A stretch of 64,000 bases of DNA, taken from positions 13,578,001 through 13,642,000 of the forward strand of contig NC_087447.1 of the NCBI RefSeq assembly GCF_036321535.1. The letters run 5' to 3'. The notes under the pieces were generated by a model. That model was not told the origin of the DNA. It worked only from the letters and a program-made list of their open reading frames with translations, and did no database searches. The stretch's first letter is position 1. Every line of letters starts with the position of its first letter. Shown piece after piece: positions 22,978-48,780 of the stretch. Source of the stretch: Camelus dromedarius. Lineage: Eukaryota. The position numbers and the translations under genes are program-made.

Positions 22978-23889
22978 TCACCTTTTGATCCAGAGCTTCT
23001 TCACAGCGTTTTTCACCTCTGCGTTTCGGAGGGTGTAGATTAAAGGGTTTAACATGGGAGTTATCATGGTATAAAACACAGCCACAGCTTTATCAATGGA
23101 AAAGGTGATCGCTGGACGCAGGTACACAAATACGCAAGGCACAAAGAATAGAATGACCACGGTGATGTGGGAGACACAGGTGGAGAGGGCTTTGCGTCTC
23201 CCCTCCAAGCTATAGGCCCTTAGGGAGTGTAAGATGACCACATAGGAGACCATCAAAAGGAGGAAGTTTAACAAGCGGATGAACCCACTATTGGCAGCAA
23301 CAAAAAGACCAAGGGTATGAGTGTCCATGCAAACGAGTTTCAACAAAGGGTTCAAGTCGCACATGAAGTGATCTATGACATTGGGGCCACAGAAGGGCAG
23401 CCAGACTGTGAAGAGGATCTGAATGGTCACGTGGACAAAGGCTCCAGCCCAGGCCACTCCCACAAGAAGGCTGCACACCTATCGACTCATGATGGTCGTG
23501 TAGTGCAGGGGTTTGCAGATGGCCACATAGTGGTCATAGGCCATGACCGTGAGAAGGATGATCTCAGCAGCACCAAAAAGATGCTCAGCGAAGACTTGAG
23601 TCATGCATCCCCTAAAACAGATGTTTTTTCTCACAGTGAGGGTATCAGCTAGCATTTTAGGGGCCACGGAGGAAGAAGAGCAGCCGTCTATCAGGGATAG
23701 GTAAGACAGGAAGAAGAACATGGGGCAGCCCAGGGCCCTGCTGGTGCTGACGGTGATCATGATGAGCAGGTTGCCTGCCAAGGTGACCAAGTAGACCATT
23801 AAGAACACAACAAAGGAAAATTTCTGAAGCTCCACATTTTGAGTCAGGCCCAGGAGGATGAATTCTGTCACGTTATTCATCCTTTCCAT
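22978..23889 (-). pseudogene. OR4C-type olfactory receptor pseudogene with one in-frame nonsense codon
   Basis: The two ORF-track pieces are in the same frame: ...ATG AGT CGA TAG GTG TGC... (TAG at 23481-23479). True start is ATG 23889 (MERMNNVTEF). Motif decay includes DRY>DHY, PMY>PMF and GFIC>GFIR. Acceptor tcttttcag| with exon start at 23918. Confidence 0.92.
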
Positions 23890-26372
23890 CAACTCAATTC
23901 AGGGGACAAGTGACTTCCCTGAAAAGACAGTCACAGTCATCCTCAGTCATGACACCTCTACTTAAGGAATAAATATGTTCATGGAGTGCCTTATTTTCTT
24001 TTCTTCTACAAAAGGCAAAAGCAAGCACAAAACCATAACAGTTGTGAGGTTTTGGTATATTCGTACAAGTAACAGTATAAGGGGTATTTATTTTGTTCTT
24101 TATAATTCACTCATGTGCTTTTAATTTTTGATGATAAAAATGCAAACTTTTAAAATCAGAAAAGAAAAATATCATACATCAAGTTTTAAGAGCCAATCCA
24201 TGATGTGACCATATATGTGGCACATTCATAAATACCCAAATATGCATGTATTTTATCCCCAAAATGGGTGGGCATATTTACCAGTGAAAAATCTGATTTG
24301 TTCTATTCACTTAAGTCATACAAAAAGGCTCAAAGACATGAAGATTCTTGCATGAGTGATACCTGTTCCTACCTGGCCTGTCTGGAAGCTTCTCCACTTC
24401 CTCAAAACTGAAAAGTGATGCTGCTACCTCCCCCAACCTCAGAGAATGTGGCAAATGTCCACTATAGCACCTGCCACATTGTCTCACATGCATATCTCTT
24501 TATTCATCAATGTGGGCCCGTGAAGGCAAAAATATGCTTTACTACAATTGTAATCTTATTCATATCTGTATCCCCAGTGCTGGCCAAAAAGGAAACACTC
24601 ATAAAACATTGACTGAGAGAGGGAGAAGAAAAAAAAGAAAGAAAGCAAATGGGAGAGAAAGAAAGGAGAAAGGGAGAATTAGAAATGCATTAAAAAGCAA
24701 AGAAAGAAAAATGGGCTTAAAATCCCAAGACTTAGTTTGGAGTTCAGGATCTACCCCTTATTAACTATATAACATTAATTCATTTTATCTCCCTTTGCTT
24801 CAATTTTTCATCTGTTAGAAGGGTAAGTACACCTGTATTTAAGATTGTTGTGAATATTAAATCATTTTAAGCATTATTATTGTTGTTGTTGGATGGTCTT
24901 TATTTTCTCATGGCTTTATCACTAAAGAAAACCTTCAAAATTCTCTCCAAACATCTCCAAAAGGCAAGGATTCTGAAATTGTAAGCTACCCAATTGAAGA
25001 GAACAAGGTTAAATGTCAAAAAGGAAGGTCCTCAGATTTTTTTTAAAGGTTTTTGAAGCAAGCTATTAAAAGAATCTTTAACATAAAGATTTAATTATTG
25101 TTCAGTTTGCTTACTTTTATGGGAATTCATTTCATTATTCATTTAATTAATTCATTTGCTAATATTTCATATTCCAAAACATTAAAAATAATGTAGTCCT
25201 TCTAATTTCAACTCTTAACAATTAAATGCAGAGTTTTCTGGGAAACAGGAAACTTTAAGCTCAGCTAATTATTCAAATAAAGGCTTTGTAGATATATTCA
25301 TTTTTGTATCTGTAGTGCTGGCCAGTATTAGGCATTTTAAAGCATTTGGTGAGAGAGTGAGAAAAGAGATGTGGCAAGAGAAAGAGAGGAGAAGAGAAGA
25401 AAAAGAAAAAGGAGAAAAGGTAAAACAAAGAAAGGAAAAGAGGAAAAGGAGGAGGAAAATGGGCACATTACAGAGCCATCTAAGAAAGACATTTTTCAGG
25501 CAGATGTGTTGTAACATTTCCAACAAGTGTTGCCCTTGAATTCCGAACTTTTTATCAAACACCTTTGTTGATTGTGGCCCTTAGGATCGACATCACAAAA
25601 AATACTGACATATAAGAATCAGGTTGTTCTTACATACAAATTGGTCAGAAAAAAAGTTTCTATTGCCCAGCTCAGTACTGAGGATTTTAAACTACTGACT
25701 TGTCACCAGTTGGTCCCTTACAGGCTCGGCAATACTTAAAATAAACCCCATCAGGGTTTTCTTCAGTCTAAGTTGTGTGCAACCAGAATCATGATCATGT
25801 TAATTTACTGTAAAAAAAAAAAAAAAAAAAAAAAGTGTTTCCAGAAAAGAAAGCCCTGAAGTAAAATCAAAAAGAAGAAAGTCGTGTCTCTCCTATATAC
25901 CAGTGCTCACCACATCCTGTCTAGGACTTCTCATCCTGGCCTGCCTTGTTCAAATAATAAACTAGCCCAGAAAGAAGACACATTCACTTTGTATTTAAAA
26001 GGAATTTGGGTTTGGGGGGAGGGGGGAGATTTCAGCAGCTCTTTCCCATTTCTATTTCTATGGGATTCATAGATGTCTATAATTTTTTTTAATATATGTA
26101 TAGAATTTAGTCTGCTAGGCCCTAAGAACATGGTTGCCATTTCTAACACTAGAAAAGTAAATCCAATTATGAAAATCAGCAGTGGATTAAAGATCCTCTG
26201 GATGAGAAATGTCCTGAAGCCAGTTCTCCCAAGCCTTTTTTCAGAGCATCTATACTCAGCGCAAAGTTAGATATTTTGGTCTTGGGGACTCATCCTTCCT
26301 CCTCCCATCTTTTCACTAAACTCCCCGGTTTTACCCAGAGGAGGTCAGGGAGAGACACTGCCTTTGTGGTTT

Positions 26373-26600
26373 ACTCACCAAAATGTCCTCACAGCCCTGC
26401 CTTCTCAAATCCTTCAGTTCTCACCGTATAGAGACACCAGTTTTCTGCAAGTGGGTGACTTACTTCTTTGCTATTTCCTCAAGGGAAGAGTAATTAACTT
26501 TCGTAGACTTTGCCAAAGTAGCAACCAAATGCTTCTCCCTTCTGGCTACAGCCCTTCCAACTAGAGAATGACATTTTTGACAATGATTAGAACTCATCTA
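26373..26600 (-). promoter_or_regulatory. Candidate promoter/5' exons of the 23889(-) OR
   Basis: Minus-strand donors GTGAGT (26373-26378) and GTAAGT (26458-26463); O/E-like TTCCTCAAGGGAA (26475-26487) next to TAATTA (26491-26496). Confidence 0.4.
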
Positions 26601-27572
26601 CAAGAATGAGAGAAGCATCAGGCTACAGTCAGAACGTGGATTCTTCATTTCTGGTTTGTTTTTTTTTAATGGAATATCTGAAATGTACCAGGCAGCTTTG
26701 TTCAATAATAAAAATGACAGCAACTAACTATTAAGTGCTGTAGGCCAGGCCCTACGTTAAACACACATATGTGAGGTATGCTTCATGATGAGCACCATTG
26801 TTATTCCCATTTTACATTGAGGAAAATGAGTAATTTACACGGGATCAGAATTGAGTAGTGGCAGAACTGAAATTTAAATACAAACCTGTCTCCAAAGCCT
26901 AGATAATGTCTTTGCCCTCATGATGCAAGAATTCAACTATTAAAAAAAAAAAAAAAAGAACAGTGAGCACTGTGAAAAGGGACATATATATCTTTATGTC
27001 ATTTGGACATGGCTTAAAGTAGGGTGGAGGTGGAAATGCTCAGGTAAAGTATTCTTTTAAAAGTGATATTAAAGTTGAAGTAAAAAAAAAAAAAACCTAC
27101 ACAAGGCCTAGATTAGATAAATTAAGTGAGGGCTTGGGAAGGTTAACAGGTTTCAGAATGGATCTGGACTATATCATTTGGTGAATAGTGAAGAGGGTAC
27201 CTGTGTGAGCCCACCAATGCATTGGTAATTCCATCCTCTTATGAGCTAACTCCAATCAATTGTACTTTTGCAAATATCATCTTCAAGTATATTATATGCT
27301 TTCCTTGTCACTGTCAGTTAGCTGGAAATTACTGCAGCCAAAGAGTTAAAATGCACTGAGCAACTGAAAAACCCAGTGATAACTGATTCACTCAGATGTG
27401 AACAAAGACAGCTTAAAGCACATAGCTGTCCAGGAAGCACAGACCTGGTTTCTATCCTAAGCTGGGGTATCATATTTTCTTACCTTGAATGAGCTATTTA
27501 AGCTTTCTTAGCCTGTTTTTATCATCCTCATTGCTTTAAAGAATAAATAGAAATAATTTTTTAATATTAATA

Positions 27573-27891
27573 AAGGCAGCCGTATTTTTCACTTTTTTAG
27601 TTGTATTAGGTAGAATTATTACAGTTTGACTGCACATTATATTGCATATAAATACATATACACAGTATAATACACATTATTTTAGTTTACATATATGTAC
27701 TGATTATTGTTTCTAAGAACAGATTAGAGCTTTCGCTTTTTAAACTTGTATAGTTATCAAAGGAATAAAGCCAACTACAAAATAAGAATCAACAGAATGT
27801 AGTAATCCAATCATAAAGGACAGTCAAATGTGCTTACACATATTCAAGAGATCAATCATCTTAGTTATAAATAATAAGTAGCTCATCTGTG

Positions 27892-27940
<49 letters not shown>

Positions 27941-28080
27941 TTAGATTCCTCATATAAATGATGTCATATGGCATTTTTCTTTCTTTTTCCAGCCCTCTTC
28001 AATTAGAATGACAATCTTCAGGTCCATCCATATTGCTGCAATTTTATTTTATTCTTTTTTATGAAGGCAGCCATCTTTTT
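27573..28080 (-). mobile_element. TSD-bounded retroposed insert: short L1 3' segment, (AAT)14 and ~290 bp atypical tail
   Basis: 17-bp direct repeats aaggcagccgtattttt (27573-27589) and aaggcagccatcttttt (28064-28080), 15/17 identical. L1 strings atggatggacctgaagattgtcattctaa and tatatgaggaatctaa on the minus strand. Confidence 0.75.
27894..27935. repeat. (ATT)14 microsatellite
   Basis: Perfect trinucleotide array at the position of the L1 3'UTR A-rich linker. Confidence 0.95.
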
Positions 28081-28429
28081 ACTAACTTAAAAAAAAAAAC
28101 AAGATCTCAAACTCAAGATGAAATTTCCACTAAAATTTTGAGAATCTGTTTTCAAGTGACTGAAGAAACGTACCTTGTCAAACACTCTTCAGGAATGATT
28201 TCCCATCACACAACAACTAGCATGGCTGCCCTGTCTCCCAGGAGCTGCTTGTTCTGCAAGCCCCCAGTACTAAAGTCTGCAGTTGATGTATCTTGGGGTA
28301 CAATTTTGGGGGTTCAAACGATGCTTGTGGTGGTGCTTCAGAGCTGATGTTGGTTGGTAGATTTCTAGGTAATTCCACATCTCAGTGTTACTGACAGGCT
28401 GTTGTAAAGACTAGAACACAAATCTAGAC

Positions 28430-29640
28430 ATACATATGCCAACTATTTCCTGAGTAGAATCAAGGTTATGTGGTGTTCAGGATTACTAGATAGCGCCAAA
28501 TTTGTTTCCAAAGTAGCTGTATCAATCCATACTTCCAGCAGCAATGTAAAAGACATCTATTGGTTCCTGTTCTCTACATTACATAGTAATCTTAAACTTC
28601 CTAATTTTTGCAAATTACATGGATACAGAGTGTTATCTCATTGTGGGTTTGATAGGCATTTCTATACTTATGAATTGATTATCACGTCACATGTTTATTC
28701 TTCACATCAGTCTTCCGCTGAAATGCCTGCTCATGTCTTTGGACTATTTTCCACTTGTCTTTTTATTTTCAGTTGGTAGAAGTTTGTTAAGCATGCTAAA
28801 CAGTAATCCTTTATGATTTAAAGTCTTGCAAAGATTTTCTAGTTGAGGCTTGTCTTTTCACTTATTTTAAGGTTTTCTTACTAACAGCAGTTCATAATTT
28901 AAATATTGATGTTTATATGCTTTTTCTTTATGAAAAAAAGTATTTTGTGTTTCCTTTAAAAAATTCATATACTTCAAAGTCACAAACATACTCACCTCTT
29001 TTTTCTTCCAAAGTACTTGATGTTTGGCTTTTGATATTTAAATGCTAAAACTAACACAAACTATGAAATCTTTGTCAAGCCCAAGTCTTCAAAAATATAC
29101 TCCAGGTTTCTTCTAGAAGATTTATACTTTTTACTCTTTTCTTTTGGTCTGTAATTCATCTCAAATTAATTTTTATGTACTTTGAATTACAAGCTCAGGT
29201 TTATTACTATCAATATGATTATCCACTATCACAGCATCTTTTGTTGAAAAGATTTTCCTTTCCCCATAGCTGCACTAGCAGCTTTTTGTGCAGCTCAATT
29301 AACCATATACGTGCTGGCCTATTTCTGGACTCTATATTCTGTTCCATATATCTGTCTGCTTACTTCTTGTTGATATCACACTGCCTTGGTTACTGCATAT
29401 TTATATTAAGTCTCAAAATCAGATAGTGTAAAATTTCAAGGTAGAGCTCTTATACATAATTGATTATATTTTTTCTTAAGTATTTTCACTTTTATCTAAT
29501 GTAAGCAGTGCTTTTCAATTTAATTTTTCAATATTTTTATTCTTGATGCAGAGGCATAGTTTGTTTTTATGTGTTGAACTTTTATATAGCAATATAGCTA
29601 CATTCACTTATTAGTAATGGCTTCTCTACGTACAAAACCA
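28430..29640 (-). mobile_element. Old L1M fragment, antisense
   Basis: ccaaatttgtttccaaagtagctgtatc...ccagcagcaatgta; cagcatcttttgttgaaaagattttcctttcccca. Confidence 0.7.
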
Positions 29641-29779
29641 TAAATTTTGCAAATATACAGTTTAATTCTTCCTTTTCAAACTCTGTCATTTTTCCATCTT
29701 TATTGCACTTTCTACAAACTCCAGTTTTTGCAAAAATCATTTAGAAAAGTCAATAGACCAACAAACAACTACAGCCCAC

Positions 29780-29987
29780 TAAAAAGTTTTCCTCATACAG
29801 TCAGAACAATACAAGGGTGTCCACTCTAAATTCTTCCTATTTAACATTTTATTATAGGTTTCTATCCTAAAAAATTAGGTTTAAAGAAAAGAATAAAAGT
29901 CATCCAAATAGAATAGGAAGAAAGTAAAACTATTTTTATTTTCATAGGAATGATCTCACATACAGATAACCGTAAAGAACCCACACC

Positions 29988-30018
<31 letters not shown>

Positions 30019-31860
30019 CTTAGAGTTAATAAACAAGTTAAGGAAAATTGCAGGATACAAAATCAACATACAAAAAACACTTGTATTTCTATACACTAGT
30101 GATGAACAATCTGAAAATGAAGTTGAGAAAAATTATTTACAATAGCATTAGAAAGAATAAAATATAGAAGAATAAGTTTAACCAGTAAGGTAGAAGACTT
30201 TCACAATGAAAAATGTAAAATGTTTTTTAAAGAAATTAAATACCGAAATCTTCATGGATTGGAAAATTTAATATAATTAAGATCACTCTTCAAAGTAATT
30301 TACAGGTGCACTGAGTCACTGTCAAGATCCCAATACCTTTTTCTGCAGAAATAAAAAAGCTGATCTTAAAATACATATGGCATTGCAAGAAACTCCAAAT
30401 AACCAAATGATGGCACATTTTTTGCTCTCTAAACTTACCAAAAGTTCTAGTAATTAAAGCACTATAGTATTGGCATGAGGAGACACATATAGACTAAAGG
30501 AACAGAATTGAGAGTCCAGAAAAAAACCCGTACATGCATAGCCAAATGAAATTTTACAAGGTAGTCAAAACCATTCATTAGAGAATGAACATTATCTTCA
30601 ACAAATGGTGCTGGAACACCTGGATATTTAAATACAAAAGAATGAATTTAGACCCCAACCTCATACCATATACAAAAATTAACTCAAAATGGATACAGGA
30701 CCAAAATGTAACCTAAAATTATAAAACTCTTAGAACACATAAGAGCAAATCTTTATGGCCTTATGATTAGGTAATGGTTTATTAAATATGGCAGAAAACA
30801 CAAGTAACAAAAGAAAAGTAGAAATTAGACTTTATCAAAATTTTATATCTTCCCCCATCAAATGTCAACATTTTTAAAAATGAAAAGGCAATACATGGGC
30901 TAGGAGAAAACTATATATACACATGTAATTTTATAAGTTTTATATACATGAATTTTTAGGACTCTATTTTTAAATGTACAAAGGACATGAATAGAAATAT
31001 CACAAAAAAAGATACATAAATGGTCAATAAGAACATGAAAAACAAAGTACTCAACATCATTAGCAATAGGGAAGTAAAAACTAAAATCACAATAATTTAC
31101 CATTCTTGGTGGGAATGTAAATTGGCATCGCATTTATGGAAAACAGAATGGAGATTCCTGAAAAAATTAAAAATAAGATTTTTGACCCATCACCCCCACT
31201 TCTGGGTATATATCCAAAGGAACTGAAATCATTTATCTTTAAGAGATATCTGCTCATGTTCATTATGGCATAATTTACAAGAGCTGGGATATGGAAACAA
31301 CATATATGTCCACTGATAGATGAATGGATAATGTGGTGTATATATATATACAATAGGGACAACCAAGGGAAAACGGTCATCTGTGACAACATGGAGTGAA
31401 CCTGGAGAACATAATGCCAAGTAGAATAAGGCAGAGAAGAGAAACACTGCATGATCTTACTTATACGTGGAATCTGAAATAGTCAAACTTACAGCAGAGA
31501 GTAGAATGGTGGTTGCCAGAGACTGGGGGAAGGAGAAATAGGGAAATGTTCACCAGGGAGAACAAAGTTCCAGCTATGCAAGATGAATGATTTCTGGAAA
31601 TCTGTTGTACAGCAATGTGACCATAGTTAACAGTACTGCATTGTACACTTGAAATTTGCTAAGAGGGTGGATCATAAGTACTAATGTCACACAAAAAAAA
31701 TAGTTAGAATGTGAGTGATAAATGTTAATAGCTTGATCACAGAGATTATTTCACAATGTATACTTATATCAAAATACAAAGTTATACACCTTAAATACAC
31801 CCAATTTTATTTGTCCTTGATACTTCAATAAATCTGGGGAGTAAGAAGAAATAAAAAAAG
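29780..31860 (+). mobile_element. L1MA-type element, ORF2 3' half through 3' end
   Basis: RT-region string cagtcagaacaatacaagggtgtccactc; 3'UTR gtagaatggtggttgccagagactggggga...ttcaataaatctgggg followed by an A-rich tail. Confidence 0.85.
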
Positions 31861-32103
31861 CTTTTAGAGTCAAGAACTTTCAAAACTCTGCCTTTAATTT
31901 TATGTCTCACTGATCTAACTCTCAAGCAATTAACAGTGATTTCCAATGAAGGTTTAATATTGGTAAGAAAATAAAAATTTCCCCTATGACACGAGTCAAC
32001 AGAGAAACTATATCACAGGTCCACACGCTGGAATTATCCCACCTGGCTCTTCACATGACATTCAGTTTTCTTAACAACCCCAGGGGCAGAAAGAGAAAGG
32101 TAA

Positions 32104-34351
32104 CTCTCACATGTTTAAGTTCTAAGTGTAGGGAATACTGTTACTCACTGAAGAATGGGTGTTTCTCCAACATATCTCTCCAGAATACCAGCTTCTGGAC
32201 AGTCTTTCCATCAAAGGAGACGATTAATTCCTAGGAGAGAAAGCGATTACTATAAGACAAGTAAGTTCTCTGAGCCTTATAGAATCTACTTTAAGTATCT
32301 ATACAAGGGCAAGGTGAAAATGATTTTTGTTGCTGCTTACATGTCCAGAGCAAGATTCATGGGCAGAGTGAACCGTTTGAATGTGCTTTTTCCACGCTGT
32401 CTGCCTCTTGTGCTACAGGACCAGAGATATCTTATTTAAAGTCATTTCTCCATGGTGCTTCAAGTGAACCCATTGCAAATTCAGAATCAGAAAACATTTC
32501 AAACAGATTTTCTGTGAAAAGCATTTGAGGCTTCAGGCTATGTGGAAAGATTTAGATATGTTAGAACACTTTCTTTTTTTAACAGGTTTATTGAGATATA
32601 ATTGAGATACCCAAAAAAAGTGTACATGTTCAACGTATACAATTTCTTAACAATTGTTCATTTGATAGTTAATAAGCTCTTCTCAAGTGTGACGTGTTTC
32701 CTACTGCAAGTTGCTTACTGTAAGAAATGGTCACTTTGAACATGGAACTGCTTCTGAACATACCCAGACATCACTTAAGATCATCTAAGACAGCTAAGGT
32801 AAGAGTTCAACAGTGCTGATGCTTATTTTAGATCGCTACTTTCCCTACACAGTAATCAGTATTTTTTGACATTTTTCAGATATAGTAATAGAATATTTCA
32901 TCTTCATTCTAATTTTTCAAGAGATATGTGTAAATATCATTAACCTAATTTGACAGTTGAATATTTTGAGGCTCATAGAGATTAAGGAAATTGTGGGAGC
33001 CAGCTCTCTGACGCCAGGCACCATGTTTGCCACGAAACGCCTCCTTTAGTAATCAAAACTATTGATGAGGATGAAAATAAAATTGAAATACACTTCACAC
33101 ACACAGGGAGGAAATTAAGAATATTAGTGACAAACCATCAGCTGTTTCATCAAGCACAAATATGGAGAAAACTGGGGAAACTGCTAAGCATAACATGAGT
33201 TTCCGTTGCTTCTTTGAGAGTAAAGTTGGTGGTGATTCTTCTGGAGCCTGTTCCATGGTTAATTATGTCTCTGTATTGCTGCCCCAACTGGTCGTTCTTC
33301 CTATCCCACAAGTGCATACACAGTCATAAAAACCACGGAGAGTCCTTCTTGTGTCCACAGCAGTGTGGTGACTGTGTTCACACATATTCCCTCAATCATC
33401 ACAACAATCTCTGAGATGGAGATTATTATTCTAACTTTACAGATGAGAAAACAAGGTGGTAAGGTGCCAAAGAGACGTACCTCAGGGGAAAGAAATTGCA
33501 CTTGGAAGAACCATGATTCTAATCTGGTCTTTCTGGTTCTCAAACCAATCCATTTAATCACTTGGGATAGTCTTTTTCAATATTCTGCAGAGAAATCTGT
33601 GGTCCCATTCTTTGGAGTGGTATCGGACAAGGGAGAGTGAGTTGTGAGGGAGAAGTCGAGATGAAAGGGCCATGCAGTGAATGCAATACCGCATATTAAT
33701 TACACTTTGAAAGTTCAAAGATGTCACTGTGTGTGTCTGTGTGTGAGAGAGAGAGAGACCTAATGAAATTGCTTCATATAAACTTGCCTCTGAAGTAATA
33801 TTGAAGTAATTAGAACAATTTTGGTCATTTCAAAAAGAGATTACTAGTTCAATATTGTTTATCATAACAATGTTGGGTATAGGTTAAGAAGTAGGAGGAG
33901 AAAATTAATAAATAAGAATGACCTGAAACCTCGTCTTGACCCTGCCCTTCATTAGCTGCTTGGTCTTGGGCAGCATTCTTAACCTCTATGCTTCTGTTTC
34001 CTTACGTGTAAAATAAGTATAAAAATGATAGTAGTAACCGTCTCTGAGATTTATACTGAGAGTTAAATACCAAATGTCTCCATAAACACTTAAGCCACAG
34101 TAAGTGTTCAGCTTTAGTTAATAGTAGCATTTTCATTCAACTATTAACATTAGTCTCTGAGGTTGTTTCCTCATCTGCAAAATGGATGATACAATACCAA
34201 CCACACAGATTGTTACCACGATGAAAAGGAAGCGTGCGTGTGAAACATTTACTACCACACCATGCACGCGGCAACCAATCATTGAAAAGTATATGTTATC
34301 ATGTATTGTAGTGATTAGATTTAGTCAACATGCATTATAAATACTTTTAAA
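32104..34351 (+). repeat. Copy A of a ~2.3 kb tandem segmental duplication (promoter, 5' exon and intron)
   Basis: Colinear with 34460-36693 from end to end (roughly three quarters identical by eye). attaattcctaggag at 32223-32237; donor CTAAG|GTAAGA at 32798/32799. Confidence 0.92.
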
Positions 34352-34458
34352 GGGGGGGGGGGGATTTAGCTCAGTGGGTAGAGTGCATGCCTAGCATACA
34401 CAAGGTTCTGGGTTCTATTCCCAGTATCGCCGTTAAAAATAAAAACATAACTACCTCC
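34352..34458 (+). mobile_element. tRNA-derived SINE, camelid vic-1-like
   Basis: G-run start, A box TAGCTCAGTGG (34367-34377), B-box-like GGTTCTATTCC (34411-34421), then aaaaataaaaacataactacctcc. No poly(A) or TSD after it. Confidence 0.8.
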
Positions 34459-34459
34459 T

Positions 34460-36693
34460 TCTCCCATGCTTAGGTTCCAAGTGCAGAGAATATAGTTTCC
34501 CCACTCAAGAATGGGTGTTTATCAAACATGTCTCTCCAGAATATCTGTTTCTAAGACAAAGCCTTTGACACAAAAGAGATAATTAATTCCTGGGAGAGAA
34601 AGCAGCAGCTTTGAGACACAGTCCCTGAACCTTATGGAGACCTCTTTAAATATCTGTACAAGGGCAAGGTGAAAATGATTTTTGTTGCTGTTCACCACTC
34701 CAGAGCAAGCTTCATTATGGGCAGAATGAGCCATTTGACCTCTGCACTGTCTGCTTCTTGCCCTGTGAAACCAGAGTCATATATTTAAGGTCATTTCTCC
34801 ATAGCATTTTTAAAGAATCTGTTCTAAATTTAAAACCAGAAAACCCAAAGAATTTTTGAGGCTTCAAGATAGATGGAAAGATTTAGGTTTATAAGAACAT
34901 TTCCTTTTTTAACAAGCTTATTGAAGTATACATGACATCCACAAAAAAAAAAAAAACTGGACATAATGTATACAATTTCTTAAGAATTGTTCATTTGATA
35001 TGAATTATCTGAATAGGCCCTTCCCAAGTGTGACATATATTTCATATTGAGAATTACTTATTAAGAGAAGCAGTCAATTTGAAAAGAGGATTGTTTCTGA
35101 GCACCCGGAAGCATCATTAAGACCATCTGAGACAGCTAAGGTAAGTGTTTCAGTAGTGCCGATGCTTATTAAAGATTGTTACTTACCATACATAGGACTC
35201 ACTATTTTCCAGCACTTTTCAGATACAGTGATAGAGGATTTCATCCTCACCCCAATTCTTGAAAAGACCATTTATAATTATCAGTAACCTAATTTGACAA
35301 CTGAAAAATTTGAAGCTCATAGAAATTAAGCAAATTGTAGGACCCAGCTCTCTGATATCACGCTTTTGCCATTAGATGTCTCCTTTGATAATGAAGACTA
35401 ATTGTAAATGAAAACAAAATTTGACTACATTTCACAGACACAAAAGACATAAATATGAATATTAAATGACATAAGTCATCAGCAGCTTAGTATAAGCACA
35501 AGCATAGAGAATCCTTCCAGGGATTGACTATTATAGATAGTATGAGTCTCTGCGGATTCCTTGGGAGTGAAATTGGTAATGATTCTTCCTGAGATCATTG
35601 CATAGTTAAATGTTTCTCTGTATTGCTACTAAAACTATCAATTCTTATTTCCTAGGTGCACACACAGTTATTAAATTAAATAAAAGTACTATGGTGTCTC
35701 AAACACTATGGTGGATGTGTTCTATATGTTATCTCAAGTCATCCTCATAGCAGCCTGTGAGGTAGGCACTATTCTCACTTCATAGGTGAGGAAACAAGGA
35801 TATAAGGTGCCAAAATAATGTAGCCGGATTTTTTTTTAAAAGTGCTTGTGGAAGAACTAGGATTCTAATCTGGTTTTGCTAACTCTCAAGCCAATACACT
35901 TAACCAGTGGGATATTCTTTTTCGATATTCTTCAGGAGAGTCTGGAGGCCCACATTTTGGAGGATGATGGAGGAAATATTTGGGGCTGAGAGAGAGGCCA
36001 AGATAAAAGGGCTGTTCCGTGAAAGCAGCCCCACAGTTTTCCTCCACACTGGGGAGTTCCAATATGTTATTGTGCGTTGTGTGCATGAGAGAAAGCAGAC
36101 TAAATTGCTCCATATAGACTTGCCTCTGAAGTAGGAGTAAAGTCATTATAATTATCATGATCATCTCAAAAAAAAAAAAAAGATTACTAGTTCAATACCA
36201 TTTATTATAACATAGCCAAATGGGTCATGGGTTAAGAATTTGGAGGGAGAATTTAACAAGTATAAATCTGATCTAATCTTGACTCTGCCTTTTATTGGCT
36301 GCTTGATCTTGGGCAGGACCCTTGACTTCTTTATACATCTATTTCCTGATGTTTAAAATAAGTATAGACATGATAGCAGTCACGTCCTGAGGTTTATACT
36401 GAGGACTGAATACCAAATGTCTGCCAAATCACTTAGAGCACACTAAGTGTTCAGTAAGTTAATACTATCATTTTTATTACAACCACTAACATTAGCCTGT
36501 GAGACTGTTTCCTCAACTGCAAAGTAGATGATATAAAACCAACCACATAGGTTGTTATCATATGAAAAGGGATCATAACTGCAAAACATTTGCTATTATA
36601 CCAGCCATACAGCAATCAATTATTTTAAAATATATATTATTAGCTATTGTAAAGTTACTGGATTTAGGAAACATGCATTATGACTACTTTTAA
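34460..36693 (+). repeat. Copy B of the tandem duplication; likely promoter/5' exon of the OR4C46-like gene
   Basis: attaattcctgggag at 34582-34596; donor CTAAG|GTAAGT at 35140/35141; continues uniquely to the acceptor at 37436. Confidence 0.92.
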
Positions 36694-37029
36694 GTGCCTC
36701 TTGTATCCATTCTTTACATTCCCATCACCAATGCCCTGTTGCTCCTTATTCAACTCTTGTAAGTAGTCTACTACTGGGGTTCTTGTGCCTGCCTTCTACC
36801 CCTCACTGAACCTCAGTCCATTTCATTCAAGACACACAAAGATCTTTACTAGAATAACATCCAAGATTCCCCCTGCTTCAGATTCCTTTCATTCCTAGTC
36901 ATTCTTTCATTCATATTTTCAGTAACCTTCCATGGCTTTCTATTTCCTAAATATTAAGGCAAATATTCTTTAGCTTTGCATTTACCGATTTTATGCCCAA
37001 CTTGTACCTCTTTTTAAGAGTTCGTGTAC

Positions 37030-37095
37030 AACTGAAGCATTATGCTGTACACTAGAAATTGACACAACATTGTGAACTGACTATACTTCAGTAAA
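37030..37095 (+). mobile_element. Very short L1 3' terminal fragment
   Basis: actgaagcattatgctgtacactagaaattgacacaacattgtgaactgactatacttcagtaaaaa; homologous to the 3' end of the 7.1-10 kb L1. Confidence 0.7.
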
Positions 37096-37465
37096 AATAT
37101 ATATACCAAAAAAGAGTTGGGTACACTATGTATGCAATGTATAATGTCAAATTAGACTCAGTAATCTGTGATGATTACGTGTGCACAAGTGGTCTCTTGC
37201 CTATGTGTTTACAAAAGTTACTTTTATCTATAATCTTAACAAAGACTGCACCTGGGAGGTAATTTGAATTGTCTTTATAATCTCACAATCTTTTATTTCC
37301 AATGTGCAGGCACACACACACACACACATAAATCAAAAGAATTCAAAACTCTATGGAATTTTGAAATGTATTATATAGTATAACGGGAAGTTCAATAAAT
37401 TCAAAGTTGCATTCATAAAAATTGTTTTCTTTTCAGGTAATGCAATTAACCATCACATAAAATAC

Positions 37466-38395
37466 ATGGAGAATAGAAACAATGTGACAGAGTTTGTTCT
37501 ACTGGGGCTCACAGAGAATTCAAAGATGCAGAGAATTGTATTTGCTGTATTTTTTGTCATCTATTCCATCACTGTAGTAGGAAATGTGCTCATTGTAGTC
37601 ACCATCAATGCCAGCCCATCATTGGGGTCCCCCATGTACTTTTTCCTGGCTTATCTCTCCTTTATTGATGCCTGCTATTCCTCTGTCAATACTCCCAAAC
37701 TGATCATAGATTCACTCCATGAAAAAAAGACCATTCTATTCAATGAATGTATGACCCAAATCTTTGGGGAACATTTCTTTGGAGGTGCTGAGGGCATCCT
37801 GCTTACTGTGATGGCCTATGACCGCTACGTGGCCATCTGCAAGCCCCTGCACTACACAACCATCATGAATCGGCGGGTGTGTGGACTATTAGTTGGAGTG
37901 GTATGGGTGGGAGGCTTTCTTCATGCAACCATACAGATCCTCTTCATCTTTCAATTACCCTTCTGTGGCCCTAACGTCATAGACCACTTTATGTGTGATC
38001 TGAACCCTTTACTCAATCTTGCCTGTACTGATACCCACACCCTAGGACTCTTTGTTGCTGCCAATAGTGGGTTCATCTGTCTGTTAAACTTCCTCCTGTT
38101 GATGGTCTCCTATGTGGTCATTCTGCACTCTCTAAGAACCCACAGCTTGGAGAAAAGACGCAAGGCCCTCTCTACCTGCATCTCCCACATCACAGTGGTC
38201 TTCTTATTCTTTGTGCCCTGCACATTTGTGTACATGAGACCCGCAGCTACTTTATCGATTGATAAAGCAGTTGCTGTGTTCTACACAATCATAACTCCCA
38301 TGTTAAATCCATTAATCTATACCTTGAGAAATGCCCAGATGAAAAATGCCGTTGGGAAACTGTGTAGTAGCAAAGCTATTTTAGGTGATAAATAA
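37466..38395 (+). CDS. OR4C46: Olfactory receptor, OR4C46/OR4C13-like (309 aa, intact)
   Basis: [63 protein letters not shown] and C-terminal GDK match recalled human OR4C46. Acceptor ttttcag| at 37436. Confidence 0.9.
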
Positions 38396-43757: not shown

Positions 43758-44687
43758 TTAATCACTATCTGAAGTCACTCTCTTCCTCCAGAATTTCCTT
43801 ATAGCGTTTTTTACCTCAGCATTTCTGAGGGTATAGATTAAAGGATTTAACATAGGGGCCACCAGAGTATAAAAGACAGCAACAGCTTTATCAACGGGCA
43901 GAGTGGTCACTGGGCGCAGATACACAAATACGCAGGGCACAAAGGATAAGACCACTACTGTGATGTGGGAGACACAGGTGGAGACGGCTTTGCGCCTCCC
44001 CTCCACGCTGTAGCTGTTTAGGGAGTGCAGGATGACAACATAGGAGACCAACAAGAGGAGGAAGTTTAACAGGCAGATGAGCCCACTGTTGGCTGCAACA
44101 AAGAGACCAAGCGTATGAGTGTCCATGCAGACAAGTTTCAACAGAGGGTACAAGTCACACATGAAGTGATCTATGACATTGGGGCCACAGAAGGGCAGCC
44201 AGACTGTAAAGAGGATCTGAATGGTCGCGTGGAGAAATCCTCCAGTCCAGGCCACTCCCAGCAGGAGAACGCACAGCCTGTGGCTCATGATGGCTGTATA
44301 GTGCAGAGGTCGGCAGATGGCAACGTAGCGGTCATAGGCCATTATCGTCAGCAGGATGATCTCAGTGGCACCAAAAATGTGTTCTGCATAGACTTGAGCC
44401 ATACACCCATTAAAGGAGACAATTTTCTTCTCGTGAAGGGAGTCTACAATCAGCTTAGGTGCTGAAGAAGAAGAATAAATTGTGTCTATCAAGGAAAGGT
44501 GGGTCAGGAAGAAGTACATGGGGGAGTTCAGAGTCTGGCTGGTGGTAATGGTAACCACAATGAGCAGGTTGCCTGAGAGGGTTACCATGTACAAAACCAG
44601 AAACACCGCAGACACTGCTTTTTGCATTTGGGGGTTCTGTGTAAGACCTATTAAAATGAATTCAGTCACATTCCTTTCCTTCTCCAT
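43758..44687 (-). CDS. OR4C12: Olfactory receptor, OR4C12-like (309 aa, intact)
   Basis: [51 protein letters not shown] and C-terminal VTSDSD match recalled human OR4C12. Long pyrimidine tract and acceptor with exon start at 44731. Confidence 0.9.
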
Positions 44688-47600
44688 CTATGTGGTGTGG
44701 ATGATAAAAACTCCAGGAATGAATGTTTTACCTTTAAAAAAAAAAAAAAAGAGAGAGAAAAGAAAAAAAGGGGGAAAGGGGGAAAAAAGAACCATATAAG
44801 AATGAAATGCATCAAAACTCTGCTTTTTAAGAGTACTCTGACAATCTCACATATGATTCCTTCTTTCCCAAAACTCTCTGAGAATAGGTAACTTAAAGCT
44901 TCCATTAGTTGACTTAGTCATTTATTATTCTGCCCTCAAAACTATTTTTATAAGACATAGGATAACCAGAAGAAAGAATTCAATTTCCTTGCCTATGGTA
45001 GTCTGCAAAACTTCACTGACACAGCATTGTAATGGAATAATTTTGTCATTAGAAGTAATTTGGAGACCAACAAGACTTAAAAATTTATGAACTTTAAAAA
45101 ACACAAAATAATCTGTTTACATGAATTATAATCATGTAAATATAGATTAAAAGTTAGTGAATGATACTTACTGAGTTAGTATTTAAAGATTATAGGTTTT
45201 ATACATTTTTAAAATAATATTCAAATTCAAATATTTCACTTATAAAATTTTATATAGGTTTTTTTAATCTATGCTAAAAACATGTATATAGAAAAGTTGA
45301 TGAGGAAATAATTTAATACACTGAGGACATTTACACCTAAATGTGAGATTACGGTTGATATTTTATTTCCTAATGGTTTTTAGTATTTTCCAAATTTCTA
45401 TATTTTACATTACTAATTTTATGATTGGAAAATAAAAACAATTTCCATGTTTTGTCTTAGAGTCCTGAAGTTGAAACTGAATTTTTTAATTGATTGGCAT
45501 ATTTATGGGAAAACAAACATATGAAATTGTACATTGGCACATCATGAGACTCCAAGAAATAGTATCTGAATGTAATTGAAGTAGCTGTTCTAACATACTG
45601 AGCTGTTATCAGTTCACCAAATGGACACAGCATGAGGACCTGAGTGGGCTTTGAGAAGATCAGAGTAGAAGGTGAGTCTGCCCTGACTTCCCCATGGATC
45701 ATTTATTAATCATGCTAAACCGCATCTTTAGTCTGCCAACCAAAATTATTGATATCTGATCTTAACTTATACCATTGACTGATAATCAATAAGTCATGTC
45801 TGATAATCAACCAGATCATTTCAATGCAAAATCTCTTTCCATTTACTTAATGAGAAATAAACATATTACTCAATTAAACTTTAAGATAGTATATAACACT
45901 AAGTTTTGTCATTACTAATTTTCACTTTTGCCTAGACTTCAGATTCTATTATTTGCTTTATTTTTTTTTTATTCTCTTTATCTTGATGTATTCTTTTAAA
46001 AAAAATATAGTGAAAGGTAAAGTGAATTATCCCTGTTACATGTGGACAAGGTATATAATGAGGCACATGGAAAGGAAACCTCCTCAAGATGATCCCACAA
46101 AGGCTTCATTGAGAGACTAGCTTTAGAGTTCCAAGCTCCAGGATAATGCTCTCCCTTCTGGATAGCCTAATGCATCAGAGAATCCTTCCAACAACAAGAG
46201 CACTTGAGAAGGAAGTTGAGTGCACTTCTAATTGCCAACTCTTCTCTAGAGGAGATGGCCCTTGGGAGAACCAACAACCAAGTAATATATTTTTATAATT
46301 TCCTGAAATCTGTACCAAAGGGTGGATTTCGTGATCAAAATCAGACAGAAAACCCCAAACTTGACTCACTCGTCCTCATTATGTCACTTATTACTTCAAT
46401 TTCTTGCAAACCTTGAAGTAATTAGAATATATTTTAAAAAGAGTTCTCTTATAGATGTCTTTGATATTCTCTGTTAATTGACAAGCTCAAAAACAGGATC
46501 ATTTTCTTTCTCTGTTCTAAACCTAGTTCATGTTTATTAATACTCAAATCCTCTAATATCCATATTTTTGGAGAAATGAGAAATGGAGTAAAGTGTTAAT
46601 CTCACAAAATAATCCTGATCTTCCATAAAAGGGCACTCAGACTGCAACTGAGAGGCAAGAACTTAAGCAGACAAACTTCTTCCCAAGCAGAGATACCTTT
46701 GTTACTTATTTAAATTCCATACACTCAAACATTATGAAATACAAACTTTTGCTATAAATCTGCTTTTTCTCAGTCTTAATAGAATGCAGGGATTAATTTT
46801 TTTCTATGTAGTTCCTATAATTATCATTAATTTTTGTTGAGTTTTGCTATGTTCTAGGCACCATACTAAGTACTTTATACGCATTATTTCATTTACAACA
46901 TCTTCACAACAATCCTACTAGGTTGGTACACTATTATCTATATTTTAAAGGAAAGGAGAATGTGGTTAGAAGAAGGTAAATGACTTGCCCAAGTCATGAT
47001 AAAAAAAATAAACAATAGAGGAGCTTGTATTCAAAATCAGGAAGTCTGTCTCTAGCTCTTTATAATTTAATACTTCTCCAGTACAGATCCAGTTTACTTC
47101 TGGGAATCAGCAATGTCAGAGTTTGGACAAAGCTACCACCTAGGACCGTATATAATTCGTGGCAGTTATTTTGCTAACCTATGAAGTGTAAAGTCAGATT
47201 TAATGAATTCAAGGGTCTATTTGACAGACCCAGAATTTTTGTACACTACAATTCTTCCAGCACCCTGAATTATATCAACTCATATGCTCTTTAAAGATGA
47301 GGAAACTGAAGCCCAGAGAGGAAGCACAACTAATTAATTAGTAGTAGATAAGAATCCAAGTCTTCTAATGCCCAACACAGTGATTTTTTTCCCCCCACAA
47401 CTATATCTTACCTTCCTTAAGCTGCCTTAAGGTGAGTGTATACAAGGGGAAAATCGCCATACGGTGACAAAGGGAATTAACATTTATATCTTATCTTCAA
47501 AAATTCCTGTCTTGATTCTCTAAGAAAAAGGATCATATTGCTAAGACCACATGCATTGCAGCAGAAATAAGGTCTTGCCTGGTTAGAACAAGATCTAGAA

Positions 47601-47939: not shown

Positions 47940-48780
47940 TAAAGCTTTAATGATTTAAATTATAAACCCCTTGGGAGAAAATGGAAATGTAGAAACTGGT
48001 TTATAAATCAGCAATTCTAGCTCACTTACCGTGGTTGCCTCTGTAGTTAAGGAGTATGCCCAGTGTATTCAGGAGCAAGAAATAACCATTACATGTAATG
48101 TCATATCATGTGTATTGCTTAAGTCCCCATTGACTGGACAATTCCATAGGAAGCAGATATGTCAAGATGACGCAAATTTATTCAAATGGATTCAGCAAGC
48201 ATTTTTAAAGTTCCAATGCCTTGGAAATTTAAGTTAAATGAAAAACAAATGAATGCTATGTTGAATTTGAAACCCCAAATCCTTACGTATTAATGGGAAT
48301 CTTCTGATCTTCAACACCTGGTCTATGGTGTCAGAACAAGAGATATAAATGTTTCTATTACTTAATAAGCCTCTCAATCTGCTCTTGAAACAAGAAAACA
48401 GCTTAGTGAATCTGAGTGTTTAGAGAGGATACTGAGAATGTCAAAGGATCTGTCTTTCTATCTAGACATTTGCCCTCCCAGGAATTAATAATCTCTGGGT
48501 TTGTTTTCTTTCTTTTTTTTTTTTTTCTTTCTTTCTTTCTTTTTTTTTTTTTTTTTAGATTTTGCCTAGAAGCAGATATTTAGGAGAACTCATCCATGAA
48601 CACATCTCCACCTCATTGGTTCTTTTTCCTGCACTTCAAACTAATATATTAACAGCCTACATTCCTGGTCTGGACATTTATGTGATAAAGCATTCCTCAA
48701 ACAAGCCCTTGGGTATCATGAACTGGGACATGAAGGACTCTAAATGCTGTGTAGACAACCCCAAGGGGTTCCATCCAGGT
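47940..48780 (-). promoter_or_regulatory. Candidate promoter/5' exon of the OR4C12-like gene with clustered O/E and homeodomain sites
   Basis: Donor ACG|GTAAGT (48024-48029); TAATGA 47948-47953; CCCCTTGGGA 47967-47976; ctcccaggaattaat at 48475; CCCTTGGG 48706-48713; CCCCAAGGGG 48759-48768; residual homology to copies A and B. Confidence 0.6.

Follow-up and report, generated by a model that had tools for sequence, protein, structure and literature searches.

Alternative promoters and first exons have been described for several mouse OR genes, among them Olfr266, Olfr267, Olfr370, and Olfr466 (PMC4721658). A related case is the mouse P element, which has conserved sequence in common with the promoter of the neighboring Olfr713 (P3) gene (PMC4721658, PMC12547500), and homeodomain (HD) elements have been multimerized in OR transgenes, with 4-5 copies of 21 bp according to the portion of D'Hulst et al. 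2016 that is relayed by PMC12547500. We analyzed here a 64-kb window of camel DNA (the term denotes the whole stretch under analysis), in which two related units lie upstream of a single OR4C46 coding exon. Genomic deletions associated with repeats, mediated by Alu/SINE recombination or by insertion, provide a further point of comparison for this locus.

Repeat architecture, splice signals, and coding exon

Units A (32105-34350, plus strand) and B (34460-36693, plus strand) form a colinear direct repeat upstream of camel OR4C46. A blastn comparison of the two intervals gave 70.95% identity over 2317 columns (E=0), a global MAFFT alignment gave 72.8% identity over ungapped columns, and the units share 14 colinear seed families with spacings of 2331 to 2359, so that the two colinear, diverged copies of ~2.3 kb reported by the first-pass annotation are borne out at 71 to 73% identity. 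When computed in sliding windows, the identity between A and B was flat (0.60 to 0.87), with one maximum at the promoter and another toward the unit's 3' end, and neither the motif nor the donor stood out. No further copy of the unit was found within the 64-kb window at the blastn level, and a blastn search of A and B against the upstream region of the neighboring minus-strand OR returned only a weak match of ~80 nt around the motif. Likewise, tblastn with OR proteins found no OR-like coding remnant in 24000-37400, in agreement with the earlier statement that no CDS lies between the copies.

An independent Camelus bactrianus assembly shows this arrangement too, joined at the same point (99.07% identity over 10.9 kb), and 98 to 99% of the words sampled from the A-B arrangement were present in DNA runs; an assembly artefact was therefore ruled out. 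Among the RNA-labelled runs X1-X5, 16 to 22% of the sampled words were present.

On the plus strand, AAGGTAAG occurs within 27.5-47 kb only at 32796 and 35138, and the donors were placed between 32798 and 32799 and between 35140 and 35141, at homologous positions of the two units. The 5' splice site of A reads AAG/GTAAGA (32796-32803, plus strand, exon end at 32798) and that of B reads AAG/GTAAGT (35138-35145, plus strand, exon end at 35140), with AAG/GTAAG unchanged across seven aligned units. The 3' splice site, TTTTCTTTTCAG/G (37420-37437, plus strand), ends the intron at 37436, 29 nt 5' of the ATG, and its TTTCAG is unchanged in eight loci. Both the shared donor and the acceptor at 37436 had been proposed at first pass, and both stand. 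The OR4C46 coding exon (37466-38395, plus strand, ATG at 37466) is intact and encodes a protein of 309 aa, with 98% identity to OR4C46 of C. bactrianus and roughly 90% to orthologues from across the placental orders. Taken together, these features support the view that a genuine OR promoter/first-exon unit is present twice, as A and B, upstream of one coding exon.

Units A and B are ancient paralogues

The units were compared with eight related loci from bovid, hippo, horse, dog, pig, and rhino. All eight of these non-camel loci are organized as one unit, then an intron, then the CDS, which at the sequence level identifies the repeated 2.2-kb unit as the conserved 5' module of OR4C46-family genes. 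In the unit tree, A pairs with the unit of pig L006, whose OR4C46-like gene is intact (100/100 support), and B groups with bovid and hippo (100/100), followed by horse and dog. A clade of A and B was rejected by the AU test (p=4.3e-8, dlnL 238), and a clade of all artiodactyl units gave p=0.043. In addition, 40 diagnostic sites join A and pig and 24 join B, hippo, and bovid, while 3 join A and B. A and B are thus ancient paralogues, with A orthologous to the 5' unit of pig L006, and the tandem (local) promoter duplication that the first-pass annotation had proposed does not hold. We also rejected gene conversion between A and B.

A second tree, built from the 3' end of the intron, the CDS, and the 3' flank, places pig with the rhino paralogues L007 and L008 (100/99), and non-coding sites by themselves return the same grouping (98/97). 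Placements of pig with bovid and hippo (p=2e-11) or within an artiodactyl clade (p=0.0017) were rejected for this region. The coding exon and flanks of pig L006 hence belong to an old paralogous lineage that is common to the pig gene and the rhino paralogues. The CDS-only DNA tree was weak (80/74), and an OR protein tree of 49 sequences formed a polytomy at the relevant depth, leaving the pig gene unplaced. In the following, alpha denotes the lineage of A and the pig gene, and beta denotes that of B and OR4C46.

The flanks and a relic in bovid bear on how the two lineages came to be adjacent. The upstream flank of A aligns with the sequence immediately 5' of the lone unit in bovid, hippo, horse, and dog, and B begins abruptly at a SINE. 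Upstream of the bovid beta unit lies a 400-bp relic (L002:4377-4775) that groups with A and pig (97/94); its interpretation as a bovid-internal copy is disfavored (AU p=0.013), and its order is that of camel, with alpha upstream of beta and no CDS between them. No alpha relic turned up in horse, dog, or hippo when the 10 kb upstream were searched with greater sensitivity. The camel-like order of the bovid relic would fit an ancient local duplication in tandem that copied just the unit (alpha-beta-intron-CDS), preceded the artiodactyl radiation, and later collapsed elsewhere, pig having kept alpha and bovid and hippo having kept beta; unequal crossing-over can collapse tandem copies in this way, and the relic is awkward for independent losses because pig keeps an alpha coding exon. 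We nevertheless regard such a history as highly improbable. The intron end, CDS, and 3' flank of pig are paralogous to those of camel and go with rhino, against an artiodactyl clade; proteins of both types, alpha and beta, occur in peccary; and the beta units elsewhere are each preceded by a flank homologous to that of A, a flank that copying 32105-34350 alone would not have supplied.

The grouping of A with pig and of B with bovid and hippo, together with the paralogy of the pig gene, points to A as the orphaned front end of a lost gene. In our judgment, A is probably the decaying front end of a deleted OR4C46-like paralogue, and B the working OR4C46 promoter. Unit A would then comprise an orphaned promoter, a putative non-coding exon 1, and the 5' part of an intron, and unit B would comprise the OR4C46 promoter with its own putative exon 1 and 5' intron part. 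[quoted passage not shown] A whole-gene duplication before the artiodactyl radiation, probably older than the artiodactyl-perissodactyl split, would have given rise to OR4C46 (beta) and an OR4C46-like paralogue (alpha), each complete with a module and a coding exon. A deletion in the camel lineage would later have taken the alpha gene from the 3' part of its intron through its coding exon, along with the intergenic DNA and the far-upstream beta flank, leaving the alpha module directly 5' of the beta module with a SINE piece exactly between them.

The filler at this junction (34351-34459, plus strand) consists of a G-run and a tRNA-derived SINE piece, in which 34360-34432 matches the Rfam tRNA model RF00005 at 39.2 bits; ARAGORN called no tRNA at the junction. 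The element is identical in C. bactrianus and is the sole copy within the window. Unit A is truncated at the 5' edge of the SINE piece and B starts at its 3' edge, no target-site duplication was seen at the junction, and pig retains the alpha intron end and coding exon. From its position, the piece may be the scar of a SINE-associated deletion, with no parental SINEs seen. If this reconstruction is correct, an apparent duplicated promoter becomes a dated piece of OR-cluster history, in which a whole-gene paralogue was reduced to its 5' module.

Promoter motifs and constraint on unit A

The 16-mer ATTAATTCCYRGGAGA occurs at 32223 and 34582, and a third copy with one mismatch lies on the minus strand at 48474-48489, where 0.27 would be expected by chance. 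In B, the HD plus O/E-like block (34574-34600, plus strand, GAGATAATTAATTCCTGGGAGAG) is identical in hippo, bovid, horse, and dog, and a block of this type is conserved in the OR4C46-family units of bovid, hippo, horse, dog, pig, and rhino. The corresponding block of A (32215-32241, plus strand) keeps the O/E-like site TCCTAGGAGA but has lost the TAATTA core, which is broken by two A-specific substitutions (TA>CG at 32221-32222), so that only a TAAT core (ATTAATT) is retained. B and all seven non-camel units carry TAATTA, or TAATGA in one rhino paralogue, 8 nt 5' of an O/E-like site that has 1-2 mismatches to TCCCNNGGGA; A is the only one of the nine units from which the canonical HD hexamer is missing. 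The claim that both copies keep the HD and O/E motif is accordingly correct for the 16-mer, but not for the canonical TAATTA, which is destroyed in A.

Besides the O/E-like site and the TAAT core, A retains a near-consensus donor and, downstream of the motif, a 32-nt block identical to that of B, and this retention counts against a relic.

At otherwise conserved core-promoter sites, 20 of 102 had an A-specific change, compared with 6 of 109 for B (p=0.003) and with 63 of 592 in the intron of A itself (p=0.013); several of the A changes cluster at 32245-32249 and may be one event. The maximum likelihood (ML) branch lengths for core and intron were 0.185 and 0.121 in A, 0.062 and 0.115 in B, 0.038 and 0.092 in hippo, and 0.062 and 0.142 in bovid, with core/intron ratios of 1.5 for A and 0.54 for B. 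The core promoter of A thus shows no sign of purifying selection in this sequence-based test, whose power is limited because ratios near 1 also occur in horse, pig, and one rhino paralogue, the units of which are presumably functional. Excess conservation of the motif and donor of A over the rest of the unit, a point raised at first pass, was not found, the core having evolved at 1.5 times the intronic rate and TAATTA having been lost. The retention of the donor and of part of the motif is the expectation under neutral drift: at 0.12 substitutions per site, we calculated a neutral chance of about 0.4 of keeping an 8-nt donor. A can still be read as a second promoter and first exon because its branch carries only ~0.12 substitutions per site, too little to erase the 8-nt donor or a 10-nt O/E-like site.

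These results weigh on the proposal that both units are working promoters of one exon, with a doubled homeodomain/O-E input having been selected and raising OR4C46 choice in camels. The O/E-like site, the TAAT core, and the near-consensus donor do stand at homologous positions in both units, nothing between the donor of A and the acceptor at 37436 would forbid splicing, and added HD sites increase OR choice in transgenes (review PMC12547500). Against this, the arrangement appears to stem from the loss of a paralogue's coding exon and not from a promoter duplication, the core promoter of A shows no constraint, TAATTA is lost in A alone, and the donor could well have been retained neutrally, so that we give the proposal very little credence. 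Two co-selected working promoters are, on the sequence, unlikely; we infer that A is transcriptionally unimportant, although weak residual activity would be compatible with its sequence.

A could also act on OR4C46 as a proximal enhancer, or provide it with a weak alternative start, without any implied selection for doubling. It holds a juxtaposed HD-core/O-E-like block, the O/E half of which resembles the Sfaktiria composite probe (probe ATTCCTTGGAGA, A ATTCCTAGGAGA, B ATTCCTGGGAGA). OR enhancers are marked by composite-type motifs (PMC5608512), the homology between P and the P3 promoter is on record (PMC4721658, PMC12547500), and alternative OR promoters are common (PMC4721658). The absence of constraint and the loss of TAATTA speak against such a role, and, relative to the Sfaktiria probe as the single composite example compared, the HD site lies on the opposite side of the O/E site with a spacing ~1 nt closer, which together make an enhancer or weak start doubtful. 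Similarly tentative is the idea of a promoter capture, in which the deletion that killed one paralogue would have given its promoter and first exon to OR4C46, which would then be driven, or boosted in choice frequency, by two paralogous HD/O-E modules lying 2.36 kb apart. A capture of this kind, if true, would be a natural case in OR gene choice, and an active copy A would offer a natural test of how additional HD/O-E input close to a promoter alters OR choice. The cross-species footprint of the OR4C46 family, made up of the juxtaposed TAATTA/O-E-like block, the exon 1 donor, and the acceptor, helps to annotate OR 5' ends in non-model mammals.

Comparison with known systems

As in repeat-associated deletions, a single SINE piece without target-site duplication lies exactly at the proposed camel deletion joint; the camel joint differs in that its mechanism is read from position and the parental SINE copies are not seen. 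The HD multimer transgenes share with the camel proposal the notion that more HD/O-E input leads to a higher choice frequency. As relayed by the source, however, they are tight helical-phase multimers inside one promoter, whereas the camel blocks are separated by 2.36 kb and the upstream block has no TAATTA.

In mouse Olfr266, Olfr267, Olfr370, and Olfr466, two upstream non-coding exons, each with a putative promoter, are joined by splicing to a single coding exon, a layout also predicted for the camel locus. These mouse cases rest on 5' RACE and RNA-seq, whereas the camel case is known from sequence signals alone, and in camel, unlike in mouse, the two units are paralogues of each other. Like A, the mouse P element is a promoter-homologous sequence with HD and O/E-like sites that is located 5' of an OR gene and has no coding exon itself. 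However, the P element is conserved and has demonstrated enhancer activity, while A shows no constraint, has lost the canonical HD hexamer, and apparently originated as the 5' unit of a paralogue since deleted.

Two 5′ units upstream of one coding exon

Two colinear copies, units A (32105-34350) and B (34460-36693), lie in direct orientation on the plus strand 5′ of the OR4C46 coding sequence, as the first-pass annotation had described. They align by blastn with 70.95% identity over 2,317 columns (72.8% over the ungapped columns of a global alignment), and 14 colinear seed families from a repeat search link them at spacings of 2,331 to 2,359. The sliding-identity comparison that had been proposed gave a rather flat profile, with values of 0.60 to 0.87 per 100 nt. 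No further copy was found in the window at the blastn level. The 109-nt spacer consists of a G-run and a piece of a tRNA-derived SINE (Rfam tRNA match at 34360-34432, 39.2 bits), with no second element of this kind in the 64 kb. Using tblastn, we found no OR-like remnant in 24000-37400, in line with the statement that no coding sequence separates the copies. An assembly artefact was ruled out, since an independent Camelus bactrianus assembly has the identical arrangement and junction (99.07% identity) and DNA runs contain 98 to 99% of the sampled words. RNA-labelled runs (X1 to X5) contain 16 to 22% of the sampled words of 32104-38395, with run X2 (0.20 of sampled words) labelled as a “reproductive system metagenome” transcriptome; the source of these words could be OR4C46 mRNA, carried-over genomic DNA, or a relative.

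The homeodomain (HD) plus Olf/Ebf-type (O/E) motif reported for both copies is present at 32223 (A) and 34582 (B) as the 16-mer ATTAATTCCYRGGAGA. The shared donor is AAG/GTAAG, cut between 32798 and 32799 in A and between 35140 and 35141 in B, and these are its only plus-strand occurrences between 27.5 and 47 kb. The acceptor, TTTTCTTTTCAG/G, was confirmed to end at 37436, 29 nt 5′ of the ATG of an intact 309-amino-acid ORF. The product is OR4C46, with an identity of 98% to the proteins of C. bactrianus and C. ferus and of ∼90% to orthologues across placental orders.

For comparison, we took eight related loci with 10-kb flanks, from C. bactrianus (L001), the bovid Budorcas (L002), horse (L003), the canid Lycaon (L004), hippo (L005), and pig (L006, an OR4C46-like gene), plus two white-rhino OR4C46-like paralogues (L007 and L008). 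The non-camel loci carry exactly one unit each, ∼0.6 to 0.7 kb 5′ of the coding exon. In the multiple alignment, the block GAGATAATTAATTCCTGGGAGAG is shared unchanged by B, hippo, bovid, horse, and dog, and pig and A have kept a recognisable form of it; the donor AAG/GTAAG does not vary in 7 of 7 aligned units, nor the acceptor TTTCAG in 8 of 8 loci. This conservation of motif block, donor, and acceptor identifies the unit, on sequence signals only, as the conserved promoter, putative non-coding exon 1, and intron start of OR4C46-family genes, and this part of the first-pass reading stands.

Related signals occur elsewhere in the window. A third copy of the ATTAATTCCYRGGAGA type, with one mismatch (ATTAATTCCTGGGAGG, 48474-48489, minus strand; 0.27 expected by chance), lies ∼3.8 kb 5′ of a minus-strand OR at 43758-44687. 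Its flanks (48420-48590) show weak homology to A and B over ∼80 nt, with a GAAA/poly-A microsatellite inserted just 5′ of the block, and the region looks like a paralogous promoter of that OR. Exact AAGGTAAG is also found at 27479-27486 and 47407-47414 (both minus strand), 5′ of two minus-strand x-type ORs, whose exon-1 donors these sites may be.

Ancient paralogy of A and B

In a maximum likelihood (ML) tree of the units, A pairs with pig (support 100/100) and B groups as (B,(bovid,hippo)) (100/100), with horse and then dog attaching on the B side and the two rhino paralogues forming a third lineage. The proposed tandem duplication of the unit failed here: constraining A and B as a clade was 238 log-likelihood units worse (AU P = 4.3e-8). 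Constraining all artiodactyl rows as one clade gave a P value of 0.043. The path from A to B measures 0.37, compared with 0.21 from B to hippo, 0.27 from B to horse, and 0.28 from A to pig. As for shared sites, 40 join A to pig, 24 join B to hippo and bovid, and only 3 join A to B, counts that rule out both a camel-specific duplication of the unit and gene conversion between the copies. The sequences thus mark A and B as ancient paralogues, of an alpha lineage and of OR4C46's own beta lineage, and not as products of local duplication.

The alpha lineage was once a whole gene, because a tree of downstream sequence (the final 366 intron nt, the coding sequence, and 615 nt of 3′ flank) separates the pig gene from camel, bovid, and hippo. 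It groups pig with the rhino paralogues (100/99; 98/97 on non-coding sites alone) and rejects both pig with bovid and hippo (P = 2e-11) and pig within an artiodactyl clade (P = 0.0017; 0.012 on non-coding sites alone). This grouping identifies the pig gene as a paralogue of camel OR4C46 along its whole length, its 5′ unit being the orthologue of A. Peccary has an alpha-type protein, 96% identical to that of pig, as well as a beta-type protein, 92% identical to that of camel. The pig alpha gene (L006:10001-10921) and one rhino paralogue (rhino-4, L007) have ATA where ATG is usual, and the annotated 306-amino-acid pig product begins at a downstream ATG.

Bovid, hippo, horse, and dog have, immediately 5′ of their single unit, a flank homologous to that of A (beginning at camel positions 31891, 31949, 31105, and 31712, respectively), and B begins abruptly at the SINE; therefore, the duplication originally spanned more than the repeat seen today, and the flank that B once had upstream is gone. 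Pieces that we take to be MIR-core-like (32926-33011/35270-35355 and 33427-33471/35770-35814) occupy homologous positions in A and B and would thus predate the alpha/beta duplication. An OR pseudogene (23003-23877, minus strand; 166-amino-acid ORF at 22978-23478) lies head-to-head ∼8 kb 5′ of A, its readable ORF being close, by eye, to the OR at 43758-44687. The pig counterpart (L006:1573-2484, minus strand) is intact and lies 4.7 kb 5′ of the alpha unit.

Proposed history of the locus

In the simplest history, a whole gene would have been duplicated into alpha and beta, after which one deletion in the camel lineage would have started in the alpha intron (at the equivalent of 34350) and reached the region upstream of beta (at the equivalent of 32105), removing the end of the alpha intron, its coding exon, and everything between. 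The joint is occupied precisely by the SINE piece, whose 5′ edge truncates A and whose 3′ edge truncates B. The piece shows no visible target-site duplication, and its position suggests the scar of a SINE-associated deletion.

A 400-bp alpha relic in Budorcas (L002:4377-4775) complicates this single-deletion history. It lies ∼2.1 kb 5′ of the flank of the beta unit, with no OR remnant between them, and groups with A and pig (97/94; AU P = 0.013 versus a bovid-internal copy). The order matches that in camel, with different breakpoints, and the alpha gene may have been lost in ruminants and camels either independently or stepwise.

Constraint on A and comparison with known OR regulation

For the core promoter (32191-32345), we counted changes specific to one lineage at sites where the other six sequences agree. 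A has 20 changes at 102 core sites, versus 6 at 109 in B (Fisher P = 0.003) and 63 at 592 in its own intron (Fisher P = 0.013). With the tree fixed, ML branch lengths (core and intron, respectively) are 0.185 and 0.121 for A, 0.062 and 0.115 for B, 0.038 and 0.092 for hippo, 0.062 and 0.142 for bovid, and 0.051 and 0.147 for rhino-4; the test is weak, because the presumably functional units of horse (0.139 and 0.117), pig (0.160 and 0.157), and rhino-2 (0.122 and 0.137) show no constraint either. Changes specific to A, some of which may be single events, include TA>CG in the TAATTA core (32221-32222), A>G in a conserved TAAATA (32274), a 4-nt insertion after 32260, and a replaced pentamer (32245-32249). 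Of the nine units, only A has a 270-nt promoter region devoid of any canonical HD hexamer. Its kept donor and O/E-like site are uninformative, because at ∼0.12 substitutions per site on its branch we calculate that eight donor positions stay unchanged with a probability of ∼0.4, and in the 23-nt block ∼2.8 changes are expected, with two A-specific changes and one on the alpha stem seen. A 32-nt block ∼60 nt 3′ of the motif (32297-32328 in A, 34652-34683 in B) is identical in A and B, one base off in pig, and several off in hippo, bovid, horse, and dog; the block may mark a start-site region or be ancestral sequence that was retained.

The sequence evidence argues against A being maintained, and the suggestion that two working promoters raise the choice of OR4C46 is not supported. 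We are confident in reading A as an ancient paralogue's 5′ unit, now orphaned, and lean towards its being functionally unimportant today, with a low probability that some activity as a promoter or enhancer persists.

The presence of HD and O/E sites close to OR start sites and their role in choice are established, and multimerised HD sites increase transgene choice (reviewed in PMC12547500). Greek Island enhancers are reported to be characterised by directly juxtaposed Lhx2/Ebf “composite” motifs, and promoters to be depleted of them (PMC5608512). The O/E half of the Sfaktiria composite probe, ATTCCTTGGAGA, is much like ATTCCTGGGAGA in B, but the HD site of the OR4C46 block lies on the other side and ∼1 nt closer. 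Alternative promoters or first exons are documented for mouse Olfr266, Olfr267, Olfr370, and Olfr466 (PMC4721658), and the P element and the neighbouring Olfr713 promoter have conserved sequence in common (PMC12547500, PMC4721658). The camel case therefore falls within known kinds, as a new example in which a relic of OR gene loss mimics a second promoter.
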